A stretch of DNA of 64,000 nt from Sminthopsis crassicaudata (lineage: Eukaryota). The notes under the pieces are model-generated. The model was not told the DNA's origin. It saw only the letters and a list, made by a program, of their open reading frames with translations, and searched no databases. The position numbers and the translations under genes are program-made. Of this stretch, positions 40,479-52,300 are shown in pieces. Location: NCBI RefSeq assembly GCF_048593235.1, contig NC_133620.1, positions 61,630,852 through 61,694,851 of the forward strand, in the 5' to 3' direction. Positions within the stretch are counted from its first letter, which is position 1, and every line of letters starts with the position of its first letter.

Positions 40479-42534
40479 ATGATCAGATCCCTAAAAAAGA
40501 CATTGCTGTCCCAAAACCGGGAGTCGCCTCAATGGAGCCCAGCAGAGGTTGCGGTAAATACTGCCAGTATTTGGGGTGGAGGTAATTGTGTGGGAATTGA
40601 AATGTAACTTCAGACTTACCAAGTTTTCTTTAGAAATTGAGCAAAGGCAAAGATCCTCGGTTTGCCATTTAGCACCCTGGTGGTGGTCTACATCAGTAGG
40701 CACATTACTAATATTTGCATCAAGATGCAGGGATGATGCTGGCCAAAACCCTGATGGTTGAGAGATGGATGTTGGGGATTTGACTAGACAACCTAACTAC
40801 TGCTAGGGCAGTCAAGACAAAGAGATCATATTGTATTTTTGGCCCTTTTTGTCCCTTGACTTTTTTTCCGCTACTGTTTCACTTGTATCCATTCTTGTAG
40901 TTCAGTCACATACAAACTGGTTAACCAACTTGGTATTGGGCAGTTGGTTGCAAGGTTTGGTTTGTTCATGGGTCTCTGTATACCAGATAAGCTGAAACTT
41001 CAGCTATCAAACCCTACTTATCTGGTAGGGAACCTGATATGACAAAGCCACTTCCGACCATAAATTCAAATTAATGATTGTCCATCAGAGCACATCCTGA
41101 AAAGATGGTTGTATTCCCAGGTGCCCGGATGTGAACTCCGGCATTATGAGGCTGGGTTATGGGCCAGTACTGTGATCAAAGGCGAGAGCCAGAAGGAGGC
41201 CCTTCGTCAAGGGTTCAGCAAACTCTTCCACTACATCCAGGGAGAGAATGAGACAGGTATCCAGCTCTTCAATCCCCCAAACAGTACCCAGAATGACCTT
41301 ACCATTATAGGTGGCAATCCTATAGAGTTGGGCTCCACAGACAAGACCAACTAAACCAAAGACTAGTTTTTAAGTTTTTAAGACCATTGGGTATGGCACA
41401 ACCTCAGGTTTCACCCTTTCTTGCCACCATTATCAGAAGGCAGCTTTTGCAATTAGTTGAAATAAGGCAGTCACCAGTAATTGAATGCCCTAAGAGGTAA
41501 CTGCAAAGGTCTCCCAAAATTTCCTGTCACATCCAAAGTTTAACACTAACATTATTGCACTGATCTAATTCCAAATTGAGGCTTAATGAGTGGCACTTCT
41601 ATACCTAAGGCAAGACTGTCCTTTAAATTATGAGTAGTAAGCTATTTTGGGTTACATTCTACAAACTAGCCTCAACTTGTATTCCAGATAGTTGAGGCTG
41701 GTATTTTTGCAATTTCCAATTTTGCTTTTCATGAGCACTGTGGCTTGGAATAACTTTCCTGAACAAAAATATGCAAATATTTTCTACATCAACAGGTATA
41801 GCCCATACTGCACTATCCTAATTATCTTCCCCAAATATAATACAAATGATCACCCAAAACATCAATCTATATCCCTGTTATCTGCCTCTTGAAGACATCC
41901 AACATAGGCCATTTAGCTTCTTCAACTAATTCCCTTTTGTGGTTTTAGCAAGATCCATGTAGATCACTATTGAGTTTTTTCTTACCAGAGACTAAGATTG
42001 AGATGACAGTGCCAGTGACCTGCCGGGTGCAACCTGGCACCACTGAATACAAGGTTTCCTTCTTTGTACCAACTAAGCATCAGAATTCTCCACCAGAGCC
42101 CACAGACCCGGATGTGTTCATTGAGGAGAGGAAAGGAGCAGCCATTTTTGTCAGGTAGTATTTGTTTCCACTTCAGGGAGGTAGAGACCCCCTTGACATG
42201 CAAGTAAAATGGGTCATCAGGACTCCACCCTACATTGTACAACTGATACCCAGTTTCCCCAAAGAATGTCAATTTAAAATGCTTTGCCTGAGGTAAAATC
42301 TTTTCATCTTATTGCAGATCATTTGGAGGATTTGCTTCTGCAGAAAAATTCAGCAAAGAAGCCAAAGAGCTAGCAGATACTCTGAAGAAAGAGGGTCAAC
42401 CCTTTCATTCTGATTTCTACTATACTGCTGGCTATAACAGTCCTTTTAGACTCTTCAACAGACATAACGAAGTTTGGTATTTCAAGAAAGAAGAAATAGA
42501 AGGCTTATGGGTAAGGGTTAAATATTTGTGCTGA
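40479..42534 (+). CDS. SOUL/HEBP2-like heme-binding family protein, 4 coding exons, 197 aa (possible 204-aa isoform using exon 42712-42756)
   Basis: join(40479-40553,41121-41256,41989-42154,42318-42534). Translation: MIRSLKKTLLSQNRESPQWSPAEVAVPGCELRHYEAGLWASTVIKGESQKEALRQGFSKLFHYIQGENETETKIEMTVPVTCRVQPGTTEYKVSFFVPTKHQNSPPEPTDPDVFIEERKGAAIFVRSFGGFASAEKFSKEAKELADTLKKEGQPFHSDFYYTAGYNSPFRLFNRHNEVWYFKKEEIEGLWVRVKYLC. SOUL motifs: E-x-R-H-Y, GFxKLxxYIQGxN, IxMTxPV, PPxPxDxxVFIE, FVRSFGGF, YTAGYNSP, RxNEVW. GT-AG introns. Kozak GCCATG with an in-frame TGA upstream at 40452. Confidence 0.93.
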
Positions 42535-43260
42535 CTTAAGTCACATGCAATTATACCTTGTGCTATTGGGGGGGGTGGAATAGGGGAGAACACGGAAGAA
42601 ATCAATGGGTGTTTTCCAATTCCTAAAGCTGCAACTCAAATAGTTATAGGAAATGGGTAGGGAGTAAAGCAAAGCACAAGAAATCATTTTGTGTTAAACT
42701 TTGAGTTACAGATGGCGAAGAACTTCCTTGGAAAAATTGGCAAACTCCTAGTCTAATGGACAGTTAAAGGAAACCTGGGCACTGACCTCAACTGCCATTG
42801 ATTTACACCCTGTCAATATCTGCATGGATCTGCCATTCCTTTAGTTTTCTTGCCAAATGAGGCAATAGGTAGTTTTTACACACTTAAACTCTTCTTGCAA
42901 AATTGTTTAGTTAATTTAAAATATTTCAATTAAAATGACTAAGCTCAGTGAGGCTCATGAATACACTCTAATGTTCTTTCCTTCCAAATATACCTCATAA
43001 TCTAGTATGGATGCATTGCCATAGTAATGGTGCTAAGTGAGCTTTTTATCTGGAAATTCATTATTATGAATGAGATTATGACAGCAAATAATGTACAATA
43101 CCACTTTATTAAAGTTCTGTTGAGTACAATTGATAACAGCATACTGGCATTTTGTTCTGCTTCCGCTTCTCAGGTCACCCAAAGTTCCTACCTGTAAGAC
43201 AAAAGACCACTCTTAGTTTAAAAACAAAAATTTAGGCGAATGAAGTTCCAGGATTTTGTT

Positions 43261-43500: not shown

Positions 43501-43581
43501 TAACCTCAGAATAAAAGTGGAACGGTTTATGGGTGAAATCATTGCCATTTCATTTGGCAGAATCAATAACATCACTGGTTA
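43501..43581 (-). ncRNA. SNORD47: C/D box snoRNA U47, copy A (intron 10)
   Basis: taacc stem, GTGATGT, gattctgccaa-ATGA, aaaccgttcc, CTGA-ggtta. Confidence 0.93.
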
Positions 43582-43870
43582 CAACTTCCACACCCCAAAC
43601 TGCAAAATCTAAGTAAAAAGTTCTTACCTTCCTATAATATTTGGGCTCCTGATTATTGTCAAATCTATAAAAAGATGATAAAACTTTAGAAGGTTGCAAC
43701 TTGGACATTTGGCCTCTTACTATGAAGAGAAATTCTCTATTTTGTCATCTCTTCTTATCCTATTTTCCCATACTCTTGCAGTGACTAAAAATGATAGAAA
43801 TATAGGCCATTGTAACTAAATGAAATTCTTAATGATTTGTTAAGATGCCACTGCATTCTGGATTCCAAAT

Positions 43871-43952
43871 GTAACCTCAGTTTTAAACTATGGAACGGTT
43901 TATGATTAAAATCATCTTGTCATTTGGCAGAATCTTTTTCATCACTGGTTAC
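43871..43952 (-). ncRNA. SNORD47: C/D box snoRNA U47, copy B (intron 9)
   Basis: gtaacc/ggttac stem, GTGATGA, gattctgccaa-ATGA, aaaccgttcc, CTGA. Confidence 0.9.
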
Positions 43953-44296: not shown

Positions 44297-44503
44297 AGCT
44301 TTGAGACACCACTTTTAGCATAATGTAACCTAATTGAAATGTCTTAAAATCTAAAATTAGAATATCACCTTTTCAGCAGCTTCACTTTAACTCAGGACAA
44401 AGTCCACTGTTGAACTGACAATTCACTTTTCATCTGCAAAAAATAACAGGAAATTAAAATCTTGCCAAAATGTGTTTCTTTCTAAACCAACTATTCAAAA
44501 TCT

Positions 44504-44586
44504 GTACTGTTTCAGAAAAAGAAAATCCTCATTCTCTTTCAGAGAGATTCCCATTGTTTTAATATATAAATCATCACTAACAGTAC
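44504..44586 (-). ncRNA. SNORD79: C/D box snoRNA U79
   Basis: gtactgtt/aacagtac stem, GTGATGA, atgggaatctctCTGA, CTGA. Confidence 0.95.
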
Positions 44587-45120
44587 ATGACATATCATGA
44601 ATCAACTCTACAAAGGTATAAGCTTTATAGGCTGACAATCAGAATCAAGTTGTCTTTATGTACTTTTTCTTGAACAATTACAATGACATGCCATTACATT
44701 ACATGCAAATTAGTCACTGATTGAACTGCTTTTTCAAAAGGCACTTTCCACCCCAGAACTTTACAAACTTTACACATGTAAAAATATTTTCTATGTAAGG
44801 CATAAAAAAAGTACACATTTTAAAATGTCAACTCCAACAGCCCAGTTTGCACACTAAAGCCTAACAAAGTACTAAATTCCTTTCACTCCTTCCCTATGCA
44901 TTAAGGAAAATATTAAAGCTTATTCTTTAAACTAGGAAAAAGTATTTGAAAACTGATAACATATTCAATCAATAATTACCCCCAAAATTACCCAATTAAC
45001 AAAATTTTTTCCTTACCCATTTCCAAGTGAAATCACAGCATCTGGACAAGGAAAACCTAAACCAAAAGTTTACATTACATATGATTTTGTCAGAGAAATA
45101 AAGGTTGCGCTTAATTTGTG

Positions 45121-46779: not shown

Positions 46780-48450
46780 ACGGTACTCATTTTATCGGCA
46801 AAAAATGCCATACGCCACTCCTAGTTCCCTGTCTGTCCTTGCAATCTAAGGCCCAAATTCTGTCACGGAGAGCCGCGGAAAGGATCTTGTTAATTCCGCT
46901 CGACTCCCTGGCTCCAGGGGAACGGGCCAGGCGTCCGGCCAATCTACCTCAGGCGCGCCTACGAGCACGTGGTGCCCGCCGCCTGCTCGGACCCCAGCGT
47001 GGACTCGGCCCAGGCCCCGCATCAGAGACGTTGGCCTTCATCAGCGGTCTCAGATGTCCCTACCAACGTTGCTTTCATCACACAGCAAGGCCTGGAGCCA
47101 GACGCTCTACCCCTCCTTCCCCCAACTCCATGGCAGCCTCAGCTTAGCTGCAGAGGCTTCTCGGGCCACGAAATCCCGCCCCACAGTCCCGAACCCAATC
47201 CGGAACCATCCAACGTTTACTCAAAGACACGGTCTCCTGCCGCGGCGAGGGCCTGGGTGCCGACTAACACCAAAGTCGCGAGGCCGCAAAGGCCGGGCCG
47301 CGCTAAGCGCCAAACGCAGCAGAACTTACCTAACGCAAAGACGCGCCACCGCTGTGGAAAGAACGAAAAGCGGCCGAGCGGCCCCTTATATAAAGGCGGT
47401 GTGACGTCATGACGCCCCCGTCGGCTTCGGTACCGCCCCCCAGCCAAAGAGCGGGAACTGAAGGCTGGAACGTCACTTAGCCTCTCCTCTCGCCTCATCC
47501 ACCTGCTCCTCCTCCCCGCCTCCCGACTCGACTGGTCAGAGCGTTCGTGGCCCCTCCTCCAGCCCGCAGCGGAGGGCGGGACTCCCGGGGGACACGTGAC
47601 GCAGGGCTGTGGCCTGGGAAGCGGAGCTGTGGAGAACGGAGGAAGGGGGAGGGGGAAAGGAGTGGAATGGGGGAGGGGGCAAGTGAGGAGGAGGAGGAGG
47701 AGGATGGGGGGGCGGTGTAAGGGTGAGTGATTTCCTTCCGGCACGTCGCCCGCTCGGGGGGAGGGGGCGGGGGGTTTCACTTCCGGGACGGTGTTCCGGC
47801 CCATTCCGGCCCATTTCCACCCCCGGAGGTAGGTACTGCTCCTCGGCGGGGTCCGGGCCCCGACTCTCTGTCCTGGCCTCCCCCCTCCTACCCTCGGCCC
47901 GCTCGGATCCGCCCCGCCCCCGTTCCCCCTCTCAGCCCAGCCCAGGTGGGGCCCGACCCCAGAGCTAGGGGCGACCTTTCTTGCCCCACCCCACCCCCTC
48001 CTCTCAGCCCCAAGAGCAGGCGGACCCGCCCCCCCACTCGGGGCCCCTCCCTCTAGACCCCCGAGACCCGCACCCACCGCGGCTGCCGCCGGGCACCACT
48101 CCCCTGCAGCCACACCCCACCCCACCCCCGCTGGACCCGCTCGGGGGGAACGCCCCCTTCCCCTCCCTGGCAGACCCGCCCCCGTGCCCACCTTCCCAGT
48201 GCCCCCTTACCCACTCCGATCATCTGCAAACTGAGCACCAGTCCGTGGCCCCGCGGGACCCCCAGCCACGCAAGGGAGAGACAGACAGACTTTTCTCGTG
48301 GCTCCCTCCCGCCCCACTCGGGAGCTGCTGGAACGAGGAAACGAGCACCAGCTCACCCAAAGGCGCTGGTGTGGGCTCCAAAATAAACACGTCTGAATTC
48401 CGAGTGGCATCGGCCGGGCTCTCTCCGAATTACATGTCTCAAAACAAACA
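46780..48450. promoter_or_regulatory. CpG-island bidirectional promoter GAS5 (-) / ZBTB37 (+)
   Basis: TATA TTATATAAAG at 47386-47395, CRE TGACGTCA at 47402-47409, TTCCGG ETS cores at 47736, 47781, 47794 and 47804. ZBTB37 exon-1 donor GAG|GTAGGT at 47828/47829. Confidence 0.85.
47017..47087 (-). ncRNA. SNORD74: C/D box snoRNA U74
   Basis: GTGATGA…gttggtagggacatCTGA…TGATGA…gccaac…CTGA. Confidence 0.95.
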
Positions 48451-49393: not shown

Positions 49394-52300
49394 ATGGAGA
49401 AAGGTGGGAACATACAATTGGAGATCCCTGACTTTAGCAACTCAGTCCTGAGCCACCTCAACCAGCTGCGCATGCAGGGGCGTCTCTGTGATATTGTGGT
49501 CAATGTGCAAGGACAGGCTTTTCGGGCTCATAAAGTTGTGTTGGCTGCCAGCTCGCCCTATTTCCGGGACCATATGTCCTTGAATGAGATGAGCACTGTG
49601 TCTATATCGGTCATCAAGAATCCAACTGTTTTCGAGCAGCTCCTTTCATTTTGTTACACTGGGAGGATCTGTCTGCAATTGGCAGATATCATCAGTTACC
49701 TTACGGCTGCCAGTTTCCTACAGATGCAGCACATCATAGACAAATGTACACAGATCCTGGAGGGTATACATTTCAAAATTAATGTAGCAGAAGTTGAGGC
49801 AGAATTAGGACAGACAAGGACAAAGCATCAGGAGAGACCCCCAGAATCTCACAGAGTCACTCCCAATCTAAACCGCCCCCTCAGCCCACGTCACAATACA
49901 CCAAAAGGGAGCCGAAGAGGCCAAGTTAGCACGGTGCTGGACATCAGGGAGCTAAGTCCCCCCGAAGAATCAACCAGCCCCCAGATAATTGAGCAGAGTT
50001 CTGACGTGGAAAGCCGGGAGCCCATTCTTCGGATTAACCGAGCAGGACAGTGGTACGTGGAAACGGGGGTAGCCGACCGGGGGGGTCGGGGTGATGATGA
50101 GGTGAGAGTTCTGGGAGGAGTTCGGATCAAAACTGAGAATCTGGAAGAGTGGCTTGGGACGGAGAATCAGCCCTCCGGAGAAGATGGAAGTAGTGCCGAG
50201 GAGGTTGCCGCCATGGTGATCGACACCACAGGCCACGGGTCTGGAGCACAAGAGAGTTATGGCTTGGGGTCTTCGGCGCCCAAGGCCACTCGGCCTACCA
50301 GCAGTGAAATGGACAGGTAAGGTTCCTTTTGCACCTTTGCAGACTGTCACTCAGGTACCACTGATCCAGGCCATCTCTCTGGTTTAGAGAGCATCTTCCC
50401 TCCCTGTTGCTTAGACGAAATAAGAATTGACTCTGTTGGGGAAATTGGAGGTGTGCCAAAAGACTTGCATTCTTATTTTTTTAAAGCAGGAAGCTCCTAG
50501 TCCTGAAGTATTCACAGTGTTGTGAGAACTATGGTAAAGTTAGACACTTCCATGAATCAGAATAGCATCTGCAGCCACACTAGCGTCAGTAATTGCCAGG
50601 GCTTCCTCGGATTCGAGGCAGGGAGCTGACCGTCAGCTGGGGACCAGGCGGCCTTTCCCTTCCTGGGTATGTTATTGCACAGGTAGGTGGCTTGGGGGAG
50701 TTTCCCTTTCCTTTATGGTCCTGCTTTGCTTTTCTTTAGCTGCCGCTTCCAAAGGAGGCTTTGCTGTGGTCCTGGTTATTCTTTGGCTCTCTATGGCAGT
50801 AGTGTGAAGCCAAGGAGATTCTTCTGGGATGGAGAATTTCTTTCTCAGCTTGCCATTGGAATATATTTTCTGGCTGGCCTTGATCAGTGGCCACCACTGC
50901 CAAGGGCCTAACCATTTCATTATTTTTTCTCTTTGTTTCCCCACTTTTCTCTTTTTAACATGCTTCTATATAAGTAGCTGAGGACATGTCTTTAAGGGAA
51001 AAGAAGTACAGGTGTTAATAATGGAATTGAGTTGAAAGTACATTAAGCATTTTCCTCCAAAATTTAGATTGGTTACTTGCAATCCAAAGAGAATATTCTG
51101 CTGTTTTCTCTATTGTCAATAAATGAATTTTGACTGCATAGACCAGGGGTTCTCAAACTATGGCCCCGGGGCCAAATGCGGCCCACTGAGGACGATTATG
51201 CAGCCCACTGGGTTATGGCAAATGGGCTGAGGGGCGGAGACAGAGTGTGAGTTTTTGTTTTTACTATAGTCCGGCCTTCCCACAGTCTGAGGGACAGTGA
51301 ACTGGCCCCCTATTTAAAAAGTTTGAGGACCACTGGCATAGACAATCGATCTACAACATATTACTGGCCTGTTAAGACCTTGTTGCAGAGATCAATAAGT
51401 GCCATAGAGATGCAAATAACCCAGGACCTCTCATATCTTCATTTAGTAACATTTTAGATATTTTCTCTCTTTTATTCCTTTACTCATGGAGAGTATATAG
51501 ATAGATAAATAGCACTTTTAATTGACCATTCTGATTTCTATGCCCCAAGATTTGGCCAGTGATAAAAATAACTGAAGTTTTAATCCAAGTGATTCAGAAT
51601 TTTATTTAGCTTCTATCACTCATTTTTAAAAATATAAGTTGGTGGTATTTGATCCCTTACTAATTTAAAATGTAATGGGACACACAGACTCTGAATAGGC
51701 TCAGAATTATAGACCTAGCGCGAATTTTAGTTCATTGAATCATATTACAGATTTCTTAGGTTTTTTTTCTAGAAGTGTTGTGACAAAAGGAGTTTATTTA
51801 CATATTGTACCTCAGTGCTATTAGGTCATTATGTACCATTGATCTCATATTCTGCAAAATGGTTTTTCTTTGATTTATGGGACCAAATGTGATTTTTTTA
51901 ACTTCGTCAAAATGGACCCAGTGTGAGCATTTCTTAATTACTATGCTGAAAATTATCATATTGTTCCATATGCTTTCCCCTTCATTATCCATAGGCTAAG
52001 GGAATGACCTCATCACTTGGAAGTTCTTTAACCGTACTTTTCTGTTACCCCATTTATGCTCCTTTGTCGACAGATTTAGCCCTTCTGGCAGTGTTGTCAC
52101 CCTGACGGAGCGACACCGAGCCCGAAGTGAATCTCCTGGGAGAATGGATGAGCCTAAGCAACCCAATTCCCAGGTATGTAGTGACAGATCTGAAGGACTT
52201 TGTTGAAATTCAAGGGTGCATTTCAGCAAGTATAGTGTTATCTTTTTTATTTTATTTCTTTTAATCACCTTGGGAAATCTTTGGTTAACATTGTTTTTGA

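Follow-up and report, generated by a model that had tools for sequence, protein, structure and literature searches.

A second SNORD47 gene in the GAS5 orthologue of the dunnart Sminthopsis crassicaudata, and SNORD47 relics at the same position in monotremes

Introduction

The locus described here raises the question of whether a second SNORD47 (U47) gene in the GAS5 orthologue of a marsupial, the dunnart Sminthopsis crassicaudata, has a bearing on the one intron of human GAS5 that contains no box C/D snoRNA. That intron is taken here to be the one between SNORD80 and SNORD47, which is consistent with the spacing found in bat. Human GAS5 comprises 12 exons as well as 11 introns, and carries 10 box C/D snoRNAs in 10 of these introns (PMC4402533, PMC6794681), while its annotation also includes SNORA103, a degenerate and non-expressed H/ACA entry (PMC10234308). 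GAS5 has been described as a hotspot in which snoRNAs are duplicated and lost (PMC2653536, PMC4408788).

A preliminary description of the window, by which we mean the whole stretch of 64,000 nucleotides that was analysed, had reported two SNORD47 genes in neighbouring GAS5 introns and had proposed that the empty human intron is a lost U47 slot; the human numbers that it gave, 12 exons and 10 snoRNAs, agree with the literature (PMC4402533, PMC6794681). The results below offer a concrete, testable history for a peculiarity of a human lncRNA gene that has been studied intensively, namely its intron without a box C/D snoRNA.

Materials and methods

Three features served to identify GAS5: snoRNAs in the order SNORD74-75-76-77-44-78-79-80-47-81, an oligopyrimidine start preceded by a TATA box, and the DARS2/ZBTB37 neighbourhood. 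The loci of platypus (L001), echidna (L002), softshell turtle (L003), Myotis bat (L004), pika (L005) and tinamou (L006) were reached through the neighbour genes, using the single large ZBTB37 exon and the SOUL part of a green-turtle model (P0070:1-150); the search with the latter returned marsupial (including Sminthopsis crassicaudata), monotreme, turtle and bird proteins. In the complete P0070 model (Chelonia mydas), the SOUL/HEBP2-like gene and ZBTB37 are joined into a single gene that spans GAS5, most likely through an annotation artefact. Positions were compared in seven species, with the dunnart as the sole marsupial, and human was included by publication only.

SNORD47 genes were scored with Rfam cmscan against RF00281, the gathering score of which is 50 bits, and with nhmmer, using an HMM trained on the U47s of the six other species only. 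Constrained columns of the SNORD47 alignment were defined as those invariant among the sequences of platypus, echidna, bat, pika, turtle and tinamou.

Results

Analysis of the window revealed a complete GAS5 orthologue on the minus strand (Table 1), in which the snoRNAs follow the order SNORD74, 75, 76-like, 77, 44, 78, 79, 80, 47B, 47A and 81. The order, the start of the gene and its neighbourhood are those by which GAS5 is recognised, and the snoRNA order and the neighbours recur in platypus, echidna, bat and pika. SNORD74, 75, 77, 44, 78 and 79, the SNORD80 homologue, the two SNORD47 genes and SNORD81 all scored above their own Rfam gathering scores, while the U76 homologue was recognised by its boxes and its position, so that the count of 11 snoRNAs given in the preliminary description holds. 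The exact ORF of the ZBTB37 exon in the window had no match on record. The predicted intron that holds SNORD79 (44435-45017) measures 583 nt, of which 432 nt lie ahead of the snoRNA, the longest such lead in the gene; this lead corresponds to the site of a second SNORD75 in monotremes and turtle.

Table 1. Positions of the features of the dunnart GAS5 locus and of the SNORD47 elements compared with it. Dunnart positions are those of the window; a slash after or within a splice site marks the predicted junction.
Feature	Sequence	Position	Strand	Basis or remark
ZBTB37 exon	Dunnart	49394-50317		flanks GAS5
GAS5 orthologue, complete	Dunnart	47370-43085 (about)	minus	TATA near 47392; oligopyrimidine start near 47370; AATAAA near 43109
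U76 homologue	Dunnart	46168-46086	minus	related SNORD24 model, 28.8 bits only; boxes present, position right
SNORD80 homologue, upstream neighbour of copy B	Dunnart	44298-44215	minus	Rfam snosnR60_Z15, 60.9 bits
Predicted exon upstream of copy B	Dunnart	44023-43997	minus	splice consensus; acceptor TTTTTTCAG/, donor CCG/GTAAGT
SNORD47 copy B (5' copy)	Dunnart	43950-43873	minus	Rfam cmscan RF00281, 71.9 bits, model 1-77
Copy B, C box GTGATGA	Dunnart	43945-43939	minus	
Copy B, guide GATTCTGCCAA	Dunnart	43934-43924	minus	
Copy B, D'-like ATGA	Dunnart	43923-43920	minus	
Copy B, C' box ATGATTT	Dunnart	43915-43909	minus	
Copy B, conserved block CATAAACCGTTCCA	Dunnart	43904-43891	minus	
Copy B, D box	Dunnart	43880-43877	minus	
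Alternative 64-nt candidate exon between the copies	Dunnart	43784-43721	minus	sequence read; acceptor TCATTTTTAG/, donor CATA/GTAAGAG
Predicted 37-nt exon between the copies	Dunnart	43664-43628	minus	splice consensus only; acceptor TTTTTATAG/, donor AAG/GTAAGA
SNORD47 copy A (3' copy)	Dunnart	43580-43502	minus	Rfam cmscan RF00281, 86.8 bits, model 1-77
Copy A, C box GTGATGT	Dunnart	43575-43569	minus	
Copy A, guide	Dunnart	43564-43554	minus	
Copy A, ATGA	Dunnart	43553-43550	minus	
Copy A, C' box	Dunnart	43542-43536	minus	
Copy A, conserved block	Dunnart	43531-43518	minus	
Copy A, D box	Dunnart	43509-43506	minus	
Predicted exon downstream of copy A	Dunnart	43427-43373	minus	acceptor CTCCTACATAG/, donor CAA/GTAAGT
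SNORD81, downstream neighbour of copy A	Dunnart	43335-43259	minus	Rfam, 51.9 bits
SOUL/HEBP2-like gene, SOUL-domain exons	Dunnart	41109-42158		flanks GAS5
SNORD47 relic between SNORD80 and main SNORD47	Platypus L001	14779-14712		Rfam, 42.1 bits, E 3e-5; nhmmer E 6e-7
SNORD47 relic, two pieces	Echidna L002	15176-15149 and 14885-14831		nhmmer, 13.9 and 24.4 bits
Repeat splitting the echidna relic	Echidna L002	15148-14886		263 nt
Sole SNORD47	Softshell turtle L003	17491-17416		between SNORD78 and second SNORD75

Both dunnart SNORD47 copies cover the full RF00281 model at scores above gathering, and nhmmer, the HMM of which contains no window sequence, gave 72.2 bits for copy A and 50.6 bits for copy B. 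The two copies have in common the start AACCAGTGATG, the end CTGAGGTT and a terminal stem AACC/GGTT, and in both the identical guide GATTCTGCCAA is followed by ATGA, an ATGATTT C' box, the block CATAAACCGTTCCA and CTGA. The terminal stem of copy B measures 8 bp in the fold, reaching 43954/43869, and that of copy A 4-6 bp. At the RNA level the C box is GUGAUGA, the consensus, in copy B and GUGAUGU in copy A, the D box is CUGA in both, and the guide GAUUCUGCCAA stands directly upstream of the D'-like AUGA in both. The same 11 guide letters were found in platypus A, bat, pika and turtle, while echidna A and tinamou were each one base off. The spacers of the copies have diverged by substitutions and small indels, the bases specific to copy B being GAAAAAG after the C box, GACAAGATG, TAATCAT and ATAGTTTAAAA.

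Copy A is the positional orthologue of placental SNORD47, between SNORD80 and SNORD81. Copy B, which is intact as well, represents a second box C/D snoRNA gene of this family and is predicted to lie one GAS5 intron upstream of copy A. The full-length Rfam matches and the sequence itself confirm what had been described earlier, namely two complete U47 genes with stem, boxes and identical guide, and with a C box that follows the consensus in copy B (GTGATGA) and reads GTGATGT in copy A. Features such as the C box, the D box and the terminal stem accompany expressed snoRNAs (PMC10234308). A search of metagenome contigs with the SNORD47 pattern carrying the consensus C box gave 0 matches.

Alignment of copies A and B showed 80% identity with indels, the differences falling at 3 of the 43 constrained columns (7%) versus 18 of the 44 variable columns (41%; Fisher p 3e-4). 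Relative to the six other species, copy A keeps 42 and copy B 41 of the 43 invariant residues. This distribution fits the earlier proposal that diverged loops with kept boxes and guides imply selection on both copies, and purifying selection on both would fit the alternation of conserved blocks and diverged spacers better than gene conversion. The snoRNA bodies gave a z of 28, but the flanks, compared over 200 bases on either side, were unrelated, with z below 0; the duplication is therefore old and not an assembly artefact. The preliminary description, too, had considered an assembly duplication unlikely. Doubling of a single SNORD47 locus by misassembly has nothing in its favour beyond the existence of two copies, and it is at odds with their 80% identity with indels, with their unrelated flanks, with the unique sequence containing splice signals between them and with the occurrence of the same layout in two monotreme assemblies. 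Its probability is negligible, and an artefact was rejected on the divergence of the copies.

At least one exon is likely to lie between the copies, the candidates being the predicted 37-nt exon, which is separated by 208 nt from the end of copy B and by 47 nt from the start of copy A, and the 64-nt exon, which begins 88 nt after copy B. The distance from the snoRNA end to the predicted acceptor is 67-84 nt for 8 of the 11 GAS5 snoRNAs (74 nt for copy A), a range that is favourable to box C/D processing (summarised in PMC10234308), while the 208 nt from copy B to the acceptor of the 37-nt exon is far from the values of most of its neighbours. An arrangement of one snoRNA per intron, 11 in 11 introns, is a prediction from splice consensus. 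Copy B and SNORD80 are also each followed by a candidate acceptor at 88-89 nt (about 44126 for SNORD80), while the exons predicted by eye stand 208 and 191 nt away, respectively; these spacings hint at alternative or additional short exons, perhaps with an empty mini-intron.

Platypus GAS5 carries SNORD74, 75, 76, 77, a Z15-like element, 44, 78, a second 75, 79, 80, a weak SNORD47, the main SNORD47 (87.7 bits with Rfam) and 81. The weak SNORD47 is a relic with two guide substitutions, without a C' box and with the second conserved block deleted, and it keeps 31 of the 43 invariant residues. Echidna has a relic at the same position, which is split by a repeat of 263 nt; its C box is shortened and, when the repeat is set aside, 39 of the 43 invariant residues are kept. 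More than 30 related copies of this repeat were found in the two monotreme loci and none in the other loci. Many of the repeat copies stand in a dense array at L002 19500-23700, which also draws spurious matches to miRNA families. In the maximum likelihood (ML) tree the platypus and echidna relics grouped at 98/95 support, and since they group and are broken differently, the common ancestor of the two monotremes probably had a complete second SNORD47. In both monotremes, consensus splice sites mark a candidate exon that separates the relic from the main SNORD47. The decayed SNORD47 relics between SNORD80 and the main SNORD47 of monotremes are new here.

The interval between SNORD80 and SNORD47 measures 600 nt in bat, where it is the largest such spacing in GAS5 and contains two candidate exons, and 171 nt in pika (L005 5650-5820), where it contains one candidate exon of 63 nt. 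The nhmmer search for SNORD47 relics in the gaps of bat, pika, turtle and tinamou gave nothing above chance. The 63-nt exon of pika resembles a fusion of the two exons of bat, as would be expected from a clean loss of the snoRNA-less intron. Tinamou has a single SNORD47, directly before SNORD81. The sole SNORD47 of softshell turtle lies between SNORD78 and the second SNORD75, and no SNORD47-like element was found before SNORD81 in this species, which is evidence of relocation within the gene; SNORD47 has moved or been duplicated more than once in amniote GAS5.

The ML tree constructed from the SNORD47 alignment of about 85 columns does not discriminate between a single old duplication and parallel duplications. 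The B copies of dunnart and monotremes did not group in this tree, and in AU tests a clade of B copies cost 4.06 lnL (p 0.07) while clades joining A and B within each lineage gave p 0.29 and 0.22. When the exons and flanks that precede SNORD47 were compared between lineages, only platypus and echidna showed significant similarity.

Discussion

A single old origin of copy B followed by decay or loss is the reading that we favour, with a probability of roughly 0.6. Copy B would have arisen by intragenic duplication before the monotreme/therian split and would afterwards have stayed intact in at least the dunnart, decayed independently in platypus and echidna and been lost in placentals, leaving the snoRNA-less intron between SNORD80 and SNORD47. 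This history is favoured because it needs the fewest events for the three layouts. The extra intron is predicted at the same place in three mammalian lineages, with an intact SNORD47 in dunnart, a broken one in monotremes and, by splice consensus, nothing in bat; copy B, the monotreme relics and the placental empty intron are plausibly linked, and linked by position only.

Alternatively, SNORD47 may have been duplicated in parallel in marsupials and in monotremes, the placental empty intron having a separate cause such as exonisation, in which case no SNORD47 would ever have been lost from the human intron. The AU tests tolerate the clades of A and B within lineages (p 0.29 and 0.22) and favour the clade of B copies least (p 0.07), and the paralogues of a lineage have states in common that are specific to it, since at C' both monotreme copies read CTGAT and both copies of the dunnart ATGATTT. 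GAS5 is moreover known for intragenic snoRNA duplication (PMC2653536), and the turtle SNORD47 stands in another slot. However, the shared states may also be explained by gene conversion between neighbouring paralogues, and parallel duplication needs three independent intron gains at exactly one place, between SNORD80 and SNORD47, whereas one old duplication with subsequent loss accounts for all three layouts. We regard parallel duplication as unlikely. The earlier claim that the empty human intron is a lost U47 slot thus stands in part: relics occupy the same position in monotremes and none was found in bat and pika, but neither the tree nor exon homology lends it support.

Copy B would be released from a spliced GAS5 intron in the same way as copy A, and the box C/D core proteins would assemble on its C/D motif and terminal stem. 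The target C of SNORD47 is expected opposite the fifth base before D'. The shared guide upstream of the D'-like AUGA would direct methylation of the 28S cytidine assigned to SNORD47, which is Cm3887 in human (PMC11550049) and C3376, reached via a 12-nt 5' element, for chicken U47 (PMC2653536). By family membership, both copies should guide 28S 2'-O-methylation, and copy B is very likely a working redundant paralogue. As judged from its position, the second conserved block is too far from the D box for a standard guide; as a guess, it may serve for additional base-pairing, for which yeast snoRNAs offer a precedent (PMC3116282).

Copy B may also be unexpressed or non-functional, its intact look being due to chance or to gene conversion from copy A. 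The 208 nt to the acceptor, if the 37-nt exon is used, and the pseudogene state of the monotreme counterparts would agree with this, but copy B has a perfect C box, a stem longer than that of copy A and a candidate acceptor 88 nt downstream. Conserved blocks that alternate with diverged spacers are not expected from gene conversion, and it is unlikely that, without selection, 41 of the 43 constrained residues would have survived a divergence of 41% at free positions, so that we hold a non-functional copy B to be quite improbable. It is improbable as well that copy B, pre-dating the mammalian radiation, has been kept by selection in marsupials for more than 160 million years as a gene that is not fully redundant. 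The spacer next to its D box, which is unlike that of copy A, could in that case pair with another RNA, or copy B could provide a tissue- or stage-specific dosage of 28S methylation, and the placental snoRNA-less GAS5 intron would be a vestige left by the loss of a functional gene.

The dunnart copies have the family, the guide, the boxes and the second conserved block in common with placental GAS5 SNORD47 (U47, RF00281), which is single in bat, pika and, by publication, human, while the dunnart adds an intact copy one intron upstream that differs in its consensus C box and its spacers. The monotreme relics have the position of dunnart copy B relative to SNORD80, SNORD47 and SNORD81, but both are broken. 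Chicken GGgCD56 (U47) is likewise a single-guide box C/D snoRNA with a 5' antisense element on 28S and lies just before U81 (PMC2653536). Chicken differs in having one U47, in intron 11 of its gas5-like gene, with no snoRNA listed for intron 10, and, unlike the dunnart, no U80 between U79 and U47 (PMC2653536). Chicken GGgCD36a/b, in introns 4 and 5 of the gas5-like gene, are likewise tandem paralogues in neighbouring introns of one non-coding host gene that arose by intragenic duplication (PMC2653536), but they differ in snoRNA family and lineage, and in the present case one of the paralogues would afterwards have decayed in, or disappeared from, sister lineages. The case is one of ordinary snoRNA paralogue turnover and brings no new kind of RNA or mechanism, redundant snoRNA paralogues and host-gene turnover being already well known.

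Two further elements were noted in the compared loci. A second SNORD75 lies between SNORD78 and SNORD79 in platypus (L001 15895-15825), echidna (L002 16286-16217) and turtle (L003 16251-16184) and had no counterpart at E<=1 in dunnart, bat, pika and tinamou; it would seem to be a further GAS5 paralogue of old origin that therians and birds have lost. The extra snR60/Z15-like element of platypus (L001 17023-16943, 37.6 bits) lies between SNORD77 and SNORD44, an interval that holds a pair of U80-like snoRNAs in turtle, tinamou and chicken.
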